Origin: Lepidodermella squamata
Lineage: Eukaryota; Animalia; Gastrotricha
Direction of reading: 5' to 3'
Length of the DNA stretch: 64,000 nt
Assembly: GCA_047495785.1 (NCBI GenBank)
Contig: JBLDXI010000021.1
Span: 806,001 to 870,000, forward strand
A model generated the notes under the pieces. That model did no database searches and was not told where the DNA came from. It worked only from the letters and a program-made list of their open reading frames with translations. Shown piece after piece: positions 31,811-37,053 of this stretch; the stretch's first letter is position 1; every line of letters begins with the position of its first letter. A program made the position numbers and the translations under genes.

Positions 31811-33239
31811 TTACCCATAAATTACGATTAATAACCAAAATATTGTTGTGAAAGCATTAAAAGAACAGCTAGTGAAACTGCCGTTTGTCACCGTTGTGGT
31901 GCTATCAGGTGACAAAGTCGTCGGGATAATAGGCGGCGCCGGATAGCAAGCTTTCTTTTTGTCTGCCAGGGCCAAACCTTGCAGGGCTTTGACGTAGTCC
32001 TCGAGCCAACAAGGCTCGCTGCAATTCCGGATGGATAGTTGAACAGGATCTCCAGTTGTATCATTCCGATAAAACGCTTTGACAAAATATCGATTGACCG
32101 CCTTGTCCTCATGCAATTCAGTAAGAACAGCTGAGTTGAATGAAGGCGTTTTTCTATTGAAATCGCCATAGGCTGCCAATAGGGTGGCCACCGTTGTATC
32201 GTGAGCCGAATAAATCCAATGTTTCTGAGGAATCGAACCCTTAGCCCTGAAATATTGATACATTTTCATTAAGGCAATTCTCCCAAAAACGGAACCAACT
32301 TGTCAGTAAAAACTTGCTGCAAATTACGAACCAGGTCACCACCCGCCCATCGTATCATTTCATCGTTGGCCACAAGGACGTTAATCCAAATATCTTGCCA
32401 TGATTCGATTTTGTCCAGCACAGTGGAATTTATCCATGCCGGTAACGGGAGACCCAGCATATTTTCGACGTGAATCGCATCGCCCATCACGCCCAATATC
32501 TGTTTGATATTTCCTGGAACCGTTATCCCAGCATTTTCGGCGATGTAGTCGAGCAACGCTTGATTCTGTGTTTGAATTTTTTGAATGGCAGGCGCGTTCT
32601 CCCACAGGTCGTCTTGAAGCTTGTTGTAGGGTGGGCATTTAATATCGCTTATCAGGAGATAATCTTCGGTCTTCGGAATTGTGTGAATTGGTATCGGTTG
32701 CCAAGATTCACCTAGGGCAGTTTTCATCCATTTCTGTAATCCAGTTGGCGGGTAGGCGCCGGCAAGGTGAGCTTCAGCACTCTGCAGAGTTCTTCAAATA
32801 AATTCTATTATTAAATATGTTTCTGGTTCTAGCCCATCTGGCCCGGGCACGTGGCTTACCGATCATGGTCAGTGCTTCGCACTTTAACATCATTCGGGCT
32901 GTATGAGTACTTGGAAGAGTTGAGAAAATTTTCGTAGCAGCCGCGAAACCATTCACCGAATTTGAACTGGTTTTCCATTCCGGCTTGCGTGAGCTGGCTA
33001 AAACCACCCCAAGGTGCCCAGTAGTCAGCTTGGTACGGATCCGTCGGATACGTAGCGTAGGGTGTCCGATCGCCATGGCGAATAAGAACCAAGGTGAATC
33101 GCAAAGTGTCGCCTGCGACGTCACCGCAATGATCAGGAAAGGATTCAGTAGCAGCAGTAAGGCTGGCAAAAATTAAGCTTGCGGCAGTAAAATAATTAAT
33201 CCTGAACGACTGGAACGCTGGCGGATAAACTCGAGCCAT
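31811..33239 (-). CDS. Histidine acid phosphatase (ACP2/ACPP family), paralog 1, putative GPI-anchored (introns 32859-32792, 32299-32247)
   Basis: RHGDRTP and SAHD motifs, WQPIPIHT, hydrophobic leader, and a Ser/Thr linker followed by a hydrophobic C-terminus with no cytosolic tail. Confidence 0.9.
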
Positions 33240-33932
33240 CGCTTTGCCGTACACTATATCGCAAGATAAAACATAAAATAACGAACACCGCAAGTTAATT
33301 TGAAAATAAAAATGACTATTTGATCTTTGCCTTAATGCGATTTTTCCCAATATTGTTGTGATAATCGCACGTGAAATAGATTAGAAGCGCGTGCATTTAT
33401 CTTCCATATATAAAAGTTAAAAATGAATGAATGATCCTCGGCTTTGAAAAAAAAAATCGGCACGTGCCGTTAGAGGGTAGAAATATAGTTACTAAAGCTT
33501 CAAGGAGAGGTCAAACGCGTTAAGGATGAACTGAATCGGAATAAGTGCGCATTCCTATGCAACCTTGCAATTTGAATCATTTGTTTATCGCGTACAACGC
33601 GCAGTTTTTTCATGGTTGCAGATATTTTTGCAATCATGTATTTTGATTGTTTAACGCCAGCAATGCTTATTTTCATTTCAATCATTTGCGTGTGAGGAGG
33701 AGCTCAGGGAACAACAGCTGATATAGCCCGTTGTTTTCGCCCGCCCAGCTTCAAGAAAACAAAGCGTCAAGTGCAATCATTTCTCGTTTATTGCAGTTTT
33801 ATCAGTTATCAGTCATGCAAATGTTCAGCAGATAAGTTATTTCACGATACTCGACAACACGTGGACAGCGCAGTGAGAACCTGGACCATCACGCAAGAAT
33901 GTCAGTCGAATCCATGACCTGAAAAGATAATA

Positions 33933-34069
33933 AAATATTAGCGTCAAAACTTGGTTCTCCAAAATTAGGGACATTAGGAGAGAAAATAAGTCTCAACGCT
34001 AGAAGTTCAACTATTTGGCATCCTTAACCACATAATCTGGATGAGCAGAGGATGTGCGGAACGTGCCAA
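33933..34069 (-). ncRNA. Candidate H/ACA-box snoRNA (host intron 3)
   Basis: Two hairpins (ttggca...tgccaa; tagcgttgagactt...aagttttgacgcta) ending ATA-ttt; the 5' hairpin is paralogous to those in 34420-34547 and 35301-35437; no clean H box seen. Confidence 0.5.
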
Positions 34070-34155
34070 GAAATTATAATAAATATCAAGCGGCTTACCT
34101 GAATGTCAGCAGGATTTCAGCGGATGGAACCATCGAGAACTGAAAAAACGAAAAC

Positions 34156-34335
34156 AAATGTAAGGAAGAGGCCGCATAACTAGGTAACCAGTTTGAAAAG
34201 AGCCCCATATGCTACGTTAATTTTGCTGCACCCACTAACGAAAACCATTGGTCAGCGAACCAGTTCAGCCGGAAATGAAACGCATTTCCGGATGCTCTGA
34301 TGGACAATGGCACGAACTCTCATTGGCAGCTACAA
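34156..34335 (-). ncRNA. Candidate long H/ACA-box RNA (host intron 2)
   Basis: Branched 5' domain with a perfect ccggaaatg/catttccgg hairpin, hinge AAATTA (ANANNA), 3' hairpin gcata...tatgc and terminal ACA-ttt. Confidence 0.55.
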
Positions 34336-34419
34336 CGCGTAAAATATAAATTGACAACTCACATTCAAGTCCACACATACTCGCCGCTTTGATATTGATC
34401 CTGAAATAGAACAAAAAAT

Positions 34420-34547
34420 TTAAGATTTCACGTATAAACTTTCAGGTTACAAGAAAAATGAAAGTAATTAATCATAAATTCTATTCTATGTTCGGCTATC
34501 TTTAACCACTAAAGCTAGATATTTGGCAGTAGTGCGGAACGTGCCGG
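34420..34547 (-). ncRNA. Candidate H/ACA-box snoRNA (host intron 1)
   Basis: 5' hairpin cggcacgttccgcacta...tagtggttaaagatagccg, H-box-like ATAGAA and a second hairpin actttca...tgaaagt; terminal box non-canonical. Confidence 0.45.
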
Positions 34548-34866
34548 TATAAAAGAATTTATAAAAATAATTCTCACCTGTTAATGAGCTGACCAACTTT
34601 CGAGCTGAAAAAAACGAAATAGCGAAAACCCAAGGGTTGATGAATCGGTTCAAGAATTGGTTATTTATTGCAATCGACAACATTTCAAAGAAAAGGAGCA
34701 CTCGGCGTGGTCAGAATGACATAAGAACAAGATTTTTACTCTCAGCAGAAGTGTATCGGTAACAAATAATAAAGAATCAAAGTTAAGACTATTTCATAAT
34801 CCCCCGCTACGCCTACGTTTGACCAGCCTAAAGTCTTGAATAAGGAGTACAAAACACGAAGCAGGT

Positions 34867-37053
34867 TCATTCTGAACCACCGAGTTGGCTTGCAAGCACT
34901 TCGACGTCCGAGACGTCGAGCGGGTCGATTTTTCGCTGGAAATGCGACTCGATCGCGCGGATATGCTCCATTTCAGCGAAGTGAGAAATCAAATTCAGGG
35001 CAAGGCCCACGCGGCCGAAACGCCCAGTCCGCCCGATGCGGTGGAGATACGTGTCGAAATCGACTCGGCGCGATTTCATGTCGATGGGTAGATCGTAGTT
35101 GACGACCACGGTGACCTGTTCGATGTCGATACCACGAGCCGCGACGTTGGTCGTGATTAGCACTCGCTCTCGGGCCTCGCGGAATCGCTCGATGATATTC
35201 GCTCGCTGTTCGACGGTCAAACCACCGTGCAATAAACCAACCTGATGACCGTCCTTGCTCATTTTCCCAGCGAGCCAATCGGCACAATTACGGCGCTGAA
35301 AAATGTAGGAAGTTGCAAAAACAAAGCAATAACACCTTCAAAATAAGCTTTGTATGAAGAAACAGCCGCCTTAATTTACGGTAATCTAAAACCATGAAAT
35401 GCTGTTATGAATAGCTTCCATGCGGAACGATTGCCGGGCTCTGGTGTTAAAAATAAATGTTGATTACTCACCTCACAGAAAATCATGGATTGGCCGACAG
35501 TTATCGATCCGTAAATCGCACAGATTGCGTTGTATTTTTCCTCGTCATTCGCGCATTTTACCACGAATTGTTTCACGTTGTCAAGAGAAAGCTCTTCACG
35601 CTTCAGTTTGATGATATCTGCGCTAGGGACCATTTTCTGAGCGAAGTCGAAGACCTCATCGTCATAGGTGGCTGAAAACAAAAGAAGCTGGCAGCTCGGA
35701 GCAAGACGCCTTAAAATGAGAAAATATTAATCCTCCTCAAAATAATTAGGCCAATATTTTTACGTTTTAATGCGGAATGAAGAATCTCGATGACCTTGCA
35801 TGGCAATCATGACGTCAGCTTCGTCCAGGACAAAGACAACAAGCTTAGTCAAGTCCAATTTTCTCAGCTTCAAGCCCCAGTCCATAACGGTACCAGGGGT
35901 TCCGATGATGACCTGACTTGTGATAGGACCGCCGTCGCTACCAGGTCCGCTAGTATTGGAGCCTCGAACAGCGTAGCCGACGCTCAAACCCGTCATGTAG
36001 CGACTCATCTCCTCGGTAACTGCGCCGATTTGAAGGGCCAATTCGTAGGTGGGAGCGATGCAAAGGGCCTGGGGATAATTCTTATTCACATCGACGCGCA
36101 TGAGCATTGTCAAAACGAAAGCCGCGGTTTTACCGGTACCACTTTGCGACTGAGCAATCAAATTGTGACGGGGACTGAAAATACATAGAAATAGGATTAA
36201 CGCATAATCAAACCATTCAGAACTCACTTGTCAGATAAAAGAATGGGGAGAGCAGTTTCCTGAATTCTGGACGGATAGCGAAAACCCATAGCGTAGATAC
36301 CTTGCAATACTTCAGGTTTCCTGGAAAAAATTTGATTCACTAATTGGTATGACGGATTTATAAGACTTACAAATTGAGCTCTTCGAAAGATTTGACGGAA
36401 TGAAGCGGTGAATTAGGATCGCTGCGAATGACCTCCAAATCTGCTTTAGTCTTGATAAGGCCCATTTTTCGATGAAGAGCCTTGGAAATCAAAGAAGCCT
36501 CATCAGGTCTATGCTCCTCTTCACTGCCCGGCTGGAAAGACGGAGGTCCATTATCGTTCGATGGCTGGCGTTGAACAGGCTGCTGCTGCTGCTGCTGCTG
36601 CTGTTGGTATGATGGACTCTCATTAGAAGGTTGACGCTGTGGGGGAGCGTTGTTCCTCGGAGGTGGCTGTTGAGCCTGAGGGGGCTGAGGAATTCCATCA
36701 GCAAGTGCCGGATCCCAAGTGTCAATTTTCAATTCTTGGTTGGATTGATTCGGCCTTTGCGGCGGAGGTGAGTTGCCCCAATCTTCATCTTCTGGCGCCC
36801 TACCCGGCGCCTGGGTGGGCGGTTTGAACATCACCCTAGCGCCTGCTCCTCGCCCGAGACCGGCCGATGGCGGCTGCTGGCCACCTGATTGAGATCCGAA
36901 TGAAAAATTCTTAGCTGCATCGTTTATCGCCTGGTTCTGATTGTTTGAACTCTGATTGGATGCGGGCTTGTTGGGGTCGAAAGAAAACTGGTTTTGACCC
37001 GGGTTCTGCGAGCCATTGTCTCCCCGCGAGGCGACTGCCCAAGGCGAAGTCAT
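34867..37053 (-). CDS. DDX19: DEAD-box helicase DDX19/Dbp5, multi-exon
   Basis: PNSPLHSVKSFEELNL, AQSQSGTGKT, PTYELALQ, DEAD, FSAT, ARGIDIEQV and HRIGRTGRFG motifs. Confidence 0.95.
35301..35437 (-). ncRNA. Candidate H/ACA snoRNA in the last DDX19 intron (35296-35471)
   Basis: Hairpin cggcaatcgttccgcatg...catggttttagattaccg, H-box AAATTA, second hairpin cttca...tgaag and ACA-ttt next to the acceptor; the intron is ~3x the local typical size. Confidence 0.6.

Follow-up and report, generated by a model that had tools for sequence, protein, structure and literature searches.

The 64,000-nucleotide (nt) stretch of the Lepidodermella squamata (Gastrotricha) genome analysed here, hereafter the window (GCA_047495785.1, contig JBLDXI010000021.1, positions 806,001–870,000), contains the 3' end of a gene for the RNA helicase DDX19/Dbp5, followed by a short unit of micro-exons. 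One RNA of the box H/ACA type, 132–178 nt in length, is found in each of four long introns: RNA A in the last intron of DDX19, and RNAs B, C and D in the three introns of the micro-exon unit, which is referred to below as the host. Every feature of the cluster lies on the minus strand, and positions are those of the window. The original prediction, made from the sequence alone, had described a cluster of intronic H/ACA small nucleolar RNAs (snoRNAs) at this locus, and with one such RNA per intron this description is borne out.

The last coding exon of DDX19 (34867–35295, 429 nt, stop codon at 34869–34867) was delimited by its open frame and by tblastn mapping, and encodes the helicase C-terminal domain. 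In a large protein search its translation shows 55–60% identity to the best named relatives, annotated as 'ATP-dependent RNA helicase DDX19/DBP5', with a match to PF00271. The preceding last intron, which hosts RNA A, spans 35296–35471 and measures 176 nt (GTGAGT...TTTTTCAG), as compared with only ∼50 nt for a second DDX19 intron read off the sequence by eye. The 3' untranslated region (UTR) extends ∼200 nt past the stop codon and contains the poly(A) signal AATAAA at 34664–34669.

The host begins 59 nt downstream of this signal with a strong acceptor, TTTTTTTCAG, whose last base is 34605. It consists of exon 1 (34578–34604, 27 nt), intron 1 (34401–34577, 177 nt, GTGAGA...ATTTCAG), exon 2 (34363–34400, 38 nt), intron 2 (34140–34362, 223 nt, GTGAGT...TTTTTCAG), exon 3 (34099–34139, 41 nt), intron 3 (33919–34098, 180 nt, GTAAGC...CTTTTCAG) and a terminal exon (33770–33918, ∼150 nt) with AATAAA at 33792–33787, the 3' end near 33770 being an estimate. 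The donors read CAG/GTGAGA, AAT/GTGAGT and CAG/GTAAGC (slashes mark the junctions) and all acceptors end in TTTCAG. This is the anatomy that had been predicted, micro-exons and terminal exon alike, with consensus splice signals at each. Across the window GTRAG occurs 1.2 times and TTTCAG 0.57 times per kb and strand, and both consensus sequences flank each of the four RNAs; because both signals are scarce, three RNA-sized inserts framed by the two of them are not attributable to chance. The host is probably non-coding, in agreement with the predicted lack of a meaningful open reading frame (ORF). In the joined exon model of 255 nt the longest ORF with an ATG start encodes 38 amino acids and covers 34099–34139 and 33804–33918 in exons 3 and 4, and a frame stays open for 61 codons from the 5' end, a length within the reach of chance; no long ORF was found over the host region on either strand.

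The first acceptor had also been noted as unpaired, and indeed no strong donor is present upstream of it. Because the host starts with an acceptor located so shortly behind the DDX19 poly(A) signal, it may be either trans-spliced or appended to DDX19. The natural reading is that of a trans-spliced downstream cistron, the last of a putative operon as had been proposed, which would be expressed and spliced at the junctions given above, would receive a spliced leader on exon 1, and would release RNAs B, C and D from its introns. The main alternative assigns the micro-exons to the 3' UTR of DDX19 as alternative exons, spliced to a donor in the last DDX19 exon or 3' UTR whenever the first poly(A) site is bypassed. 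Such an arrangement would account for an acceptor that lacks an upstream exon of its own and for the absence of an evident promoter for the host at the locus, and a donor-like site, AAC/GTAGGC, is the best of its kind in the DDX19 3' UTR (34819–34811). However, a canonical AATAAA precedes the acceptor, and the only donor candidates in the 3' UTR deviate from the GTRAG that is common to all four snoRNA-bearing introns, which makes this 3'-UTR extension unlikely.

All four RNAs display the layout of hairpin, hinge, hairpin and tail, with 3' ends that are predicted from the sequence. An H box of the ANANNA type, AAAUUA, separates the two hairpins of RNAs A and C; RNA B carries AUAGAA/AGAAUA at this point, and RNA D only a weak and imperfect AUAGUU. 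The tails of RNAs A and C read ACA-UUU, and at the same place RNAs B and D have AAA-UUU and AUA-UUU, respectively. In the 5' hairpins the distance from the pocket apex to the H box is 15 nt in RNA A, 14 nt in RNA D and 14–17 nt in RNA B, depending on the box chosen, whereas in the 3' hairpins of RNAs A and C the apex lies 15 and 16 nt from the ACA, against a criterion of 14–16 nt. The 5' hairpin of RNA C and the 3' hairpin of RNA D have no proper pocket.

RNA A (35301–35436, 136 nt; H box at 35377–35372, ACA at 35306–35304) aligns over the full length of the Rfam model RF00600 (SNORA79, positions 1–143) with a score of 45.6 bits, corresponding to E-values of 7.7e-6 at the scale of the region and of 8.2e-5 at that of the genome, and is the sole match to this model in the 121-Mb genome. 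A point against the assignment is that the score falls short of the RF00600 gathering score of 55 bits; a scan of the whole window at gathering thresholds gave no Rfam matches. Since the match is nevertheless full-length and unique, RNA A is regarded as a functional orthologue on account of its targets rather than as a family member by Rfam threshold.

Human SNORA79, also known as ACA65, resides in an intron of GTF2A1 and has been assigned to pseudouridines (psi) 31 and 86 of U6 small nuclear RNA (snRNA) (PMC1636440, table; PMC3884663). The U6 of L. squamata was fetched from the genome, where scoring covered at least 31 copies, almost all of them equal in score. The 5' pocket of RNA A, formed by the strands 35431–35424 and 35391–35386, pairs with this U6 as CUAAAA-UU-GGAACGAU through 6+8 base pairs (bp), at own position 30, the site equivalent to human psi31. 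Its 3' pocket (35359–35353 and 35321–35315) pairs as GCAAAA-UC-GUGAAG through 6+6 bp, including one G-U pair, at own position 85, the equivalent of human psi86. With the arms limited to the pocket, shuffled target sets reach the observed score in 1 of 300 cases for the 5' pocket and in 19–27 of 300 for the 3' pocket. At the second site the own U6 reads GCAAAAUC, while human U6 has GCAAAUUC here, with U85 at the place of an A in the own U6; the guide strand of RNA A is UUUUGC where the Rfam consensus has aUUUGC. Guide and target have thus changed together, the change from U to A in U6 being matched by a change from A to U in the guide. In function, RNA A is regarded as the SNORA79 orthologue and as a predicted guide of U6 at the U31 and U86 equivalents. 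This identity of the DDX19 copy, with U6 and not ribosomal RNA (rRNA) as its target, is new relative to the original prediction.

The U6 genes themselves, at least 31 in number, are distributed over contigs C12, C29, C3 and C32, and most of them form clusters on two contigs. In one copy (L013) a short repeat has replaced the 5' third. A weak U6-like sequence on C19 (L014, 38 bits) keeps the ACAGAGA and the 3' stem and differs in its other parts. Long same-strand clusters with a spacing of ∼1.5–3.4 kb are formed by the genes for U5 (C25, 47161–107259) and U2 (C15, 3264183–3290274).

The 5' hairpin of RNA A has paralogs in RNA B (34416–34547, 132 nt) and RNA D (33933–34069, 137 nt); RNA D as a whole folds with a z-score of −4.4. 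A hairpin GGCA(AT)CGTTCCGCA...TGGTTWWRGAT is common to the last DDX19 intron and to host introns 1 and 3, as had been proposed, and a search of the 121-Mb genome with the pattern GGCAN{0,2}CGTTCCGCAN{18,42}TGGTT gave exactly three matches, every one of them at this locus, against none for a control pattern. In a three-way alignment three of the five pairs of the upper stem show double-sided changes while 100% of the cells remain paired, in line with the covariation that had been described. The further claim that the strands of the internal loop are conserved applies to only one of them. All seven columns of the 5' pocket strand, CGUUCCG, are invariant (34541–34535 in RNA B and 34063–34057 in RNA D), as are the stem bases flanking this strand, and the loops have diverged. 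In contrast, the 3' pocket strand varies, with GUUUUAG in RNA A, GUUAAAG in RNA B (GUUAAAGAUA, 34506–34497) and GUUAAGG in RNA D (GUUAAGGAU, 34028–34020), so that the predicted target changes. RNAs B and D thus deviate from RNA A by two to three guide bases and have a derived GUUAA in common, and because of these differences at guide positions the three hairpins cannot be assigned one common target. The hinges that follow are ACAUAGAAUAGA (34491–34480) in RNA B and AUAGUU (34014–34009) in RNA D. Outside the hairpin an alignment of RNAs B and D is no better than one of unrelated AT-rich sequence, and for the exon-plus-intron units 1 and 3 as wholes no homology was supported beyond the hairpin, the optimised alignment reaching only 49% identity.

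RNAs B and D fit U6 poorly, since the replacement of UUUUAG by UUAAAG or UUAAGG places two A-A mismatches at the centre of the duplex with U6. It may still be asked whether both RNAs guide the psi31 equivalent redundantly with RNA A, by a short duplex of 6 bp plus 2 bp ahead of the two mismatches. They have retained both the 5' pocket strand of RNA A and the UU beside the pocket apex, and a duplex of ∼8 bp is close to the lower limit reported for H/ACA guides. Yet U6 is absent from the top-scoring sites of RNAs B and D, and the exchange of UU for AA in mid-duplex has been retained in both copies, so that redundant guidance of U6 seems improbable. A U6 variant with CUUUAA, which could accommodate RNAs B and D, does not occur among the U6 copies of the genome.

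To find what the pockets could recognise, the own small-subunit (SSU) rRNA, the region comprising the internal transcribed spacers (ITS), 5.8S and large-subunit (LSU) rRNA, and U1, U2, U4, U5 and U6 were scanned. The top site for both RNAs B and D in these rRNAs and snRNAs is AUCCGUAAC-UU-CGGAAC in the LSU. This is the site that had been put forward tentatively for the shared pocket; it holds as the best match for RNAs B and D, but not for RNA A, which pairs with U6. RNA D would form 4 bp, a mismatch, 4 bp and then 6 bp with it, and RNA B 4+6 bp followed by 3 bp past two mismatches. Within the cUUCGg tetraloop the first U would be the target, which lies at position 1935 of the Rfam LSU model and at about position 2229 of the own LSU. 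Where the Rfam eukaryotic consensus has cGGgAa the own LSU reads CGGAAC, which permits six Watson-Crick pairs with the guide GUUCCG. Elsewhere in the genome no multicopy perfect target for the pocket of RNAs B and D was found, and the search for its perfect complement gave 12 single-copy matches with one mismatch, as compared with 47 for a control.

In the human numbering, psi2826 and psi2830 lie ∼30 nt upstream of the cUUCGg tetraloop. An equation of the LSU site with human 28S psi2830 (SNORA49; PMC6984369) was rejected, as psi2826 and psi2830 are listed in helix 61 (PMC10227372, supplement). L. squamata has a highly compact rDNA (C65, 145152–151868). Read by eye, the stretch of 1500 nt ahead of the LSU already reaches several hundred bases into the 3' part of the SSU, so ITS1, 5.8S and ITS2 together can amount to only roughly 0.8 kb.

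Several observations weigh against a functional role of RNAs B and D at this site, and most of them can equally be used to argue that both are decaying or functionless copies of the SNORA79 5' hairpin that match the LSU by chance. Both RNAs have AAA or AUA in place of ACA together with imperfect H boxes, and in permissive scans neither matches an Rfam family. The 3' hairpin of RNA D is a nearly closed stem of 14 bp without an obvious pocket. The pairing with the LSU contains one mismatch in RNA D and two in RNA B, and shuffles attain the score of RNA B in 42–83 of 300 cases; for RNA D this number is 45 of 300 if no mismatch is allowed and 5 of 300 if one is allowed. Under strict scoring the LSU pairing of both RNAs therefore lies within the range of the shuffles, and under laxer scoring 10 of 100 shuffles are as good as RNA D and 73 of 100 as good as RNA B. 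In addition, a pseudouridine at this position of the LSU was not found on record for other species.

On the other hand, a decaying hairpin would not be expected to keep its upper stem fully paired through three double changes, nor its 5' pocket strand and the adjoining stem bases unaltered, while the loops drift and the 3' halves diverge beyond alignment. The derived GUUAA in both copies likewise speaks against decay, as do the consensus splice sites retained by their introns, and according to mutational studies the ACA box can be replaced by ANA variants. Taken together, the conserved 5' pocket strand, the compensated stem and the shared GUUAA argue for selection on an altered specificity, and the explanation by decay and chance is considered unlikely. 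If the pockets of RNAs B and D are functional, the tetraloop U of the LSU is the best candidate for their target, with statistical support that is modest to weak.

RNA C (34156–34333, 178 nt) answers to the different, ACA-terminated RNA of ∼180 nt that had been predicted for host intron 2. It consists of a long 5' hairpin, the H box AAAUUA at 34223–34218, and a 3' hairpin followed by the ACA at 34161–34159. The 5' hairpin is very stable (z-score of −3.2) and lacks a canonical pocket, and the 3' hairpin has a small pocket, located at the distance from the ACA given above. Permissive scans revealed no Rfam match for RNA C, and in the rRNA and snRNA scans no target above the shuffles emerged for this RNA or for the 3' hairpins of RNAs B and D; RNA C is best described as an orphan of the H/ACA type. 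The Rfam search, which had been recommended as a check of the cluster, has thus identified RNA A as SNORA79 in a permissive scan and yielded nothing credible for RNAs B, C and D. Overall, the observation underlying the original prediction is confirmed, and its interpretation is partly supported.

The explanation that we regard as fairly probable is that the locus encodes four intronic box H/ACA guides, with RNA A as a U6 guide, RNAs B and D carrying duplicated and altered versions of its 5' hairpin, and RNA C having no discernible target. RNA A would be released from the last intron of DDX19 and would present the U31 equivalent of U6 in its 5' pocket and the U86 equivalent in its 3' pocket. 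Behind the DDX19 poly(A) signal, a short spliced unit would yield RNAs B, C and D from its three introns. Duplication of the 5' hairpin of RNA A would have given rise to those of RNAs B and D, in which the CGUUCCG strand and the helical frame were kept and the stems compensated. With the change of the 3' strand from UUUUAG to UUAAAG and UUAAGG the fit to U6 would have been lost, and another uridine would most likely be guided instead. A more specific and decidedly speculative version, to which we lend rather less credence, assumes that two duplications carried the hairpin of RNA A, an ancient guide for U6 psi31, into a newly arisen, trans-spliced and non-coding cistron and that two to three changes redirected it from U6 to the LSU tetraloop, creating a lineage-specific pseudouridine. 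In this scheme RNA B (UUAAAG) would be intermediate between RNA A (UUUUAG) and RNA D (UUAAGG).

With respect to the surroundings of the cluster, the DDX19 exon has two close relatives in ENA metagenome assemblies, with 89% and 83% identity, found in the large protein search. The alignment of both to the exon stops or diverges past ...AIENKFG, and both probably contain an extra intron where the last DDX19 exon of L. squamata is single. A scan of the JGI metagenomes returned DDX19 relatives only, at identities of 60% or less. Downstream of the host, beyond an intergenic gap of ∼540 nt, a further minus-strand gene (32856–33245) starts near 33245 with a signal-peptide-like N-terminus, which is followed by LIRHGDRTP, a histidine acid phosphatase motif.

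A comparison with known systems reveals that RNA A and SNORA79/ACA65 agree in the two-hairpin layout, in the pocket strands GUUCC/UUUUAG and CUUCA/UUUGC, in the equal order of the hairpins that serve the two U6 targets, and in an intronic location (PMC1636440). They differ in their host genes, GTF2A1 and DDX19, respectively, and in one guide base, which matches the base change in the U6 of this animal. No CAB-box-like UGAG is seen in the terminal loops of RNA A, as read by eye. RNAs B and D have only the 5' hairpin in common with SNORA79/ACA65 and are not members of this family. The host resembles non-coding snoRNA hosts such as mammalian UHG and GAS5 and Drosophila Uhg in its tiny exons, the lack of a long ORF and the presence of one snoRNA per intron, and by virtue of these properties its introns look like the functional product. 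The classic hosts carry mostly C/D RNAs, whereas the present, putative one carries H/ACA RNAs.

Precedents exist for H/ACA RNAs in introns, for non-coding hosts and for guides whose targets span snRNAs and rRNAs, and the pocket of an snRNA guide can be so similar to that for an rRNA site that few base changes suffice to move the specificity (PMC3884663, PMC6298559). Overlapping snRNA and rRNA specificities, as would be the case for the hairpin family at this locus, are found in C/D RNAs of the mgU6-77 type and in Drosophila pugU1-6 and pugU2-55. There both specificities reside in one RNA, whereas here they would be divided over separate, duplicated hairpins, with the rRNA activity being predicted. 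The arrangement of the host is in itself ordinary. The SNORA79-type double U6 guide is now placed in a spiralian animal, which suggests that pseudouridylation at U6 psi31 and psi86 and its guide date back to early bilaterians, and the joint change of guide and target at the second U6 site represents a small natural experiment in support of a U6-guiding function. RNAs B and D, in turn, are candidates for a guide hairpin whose target was shifted from an snRNA to rRNA through duplication and a small number of substitutions.

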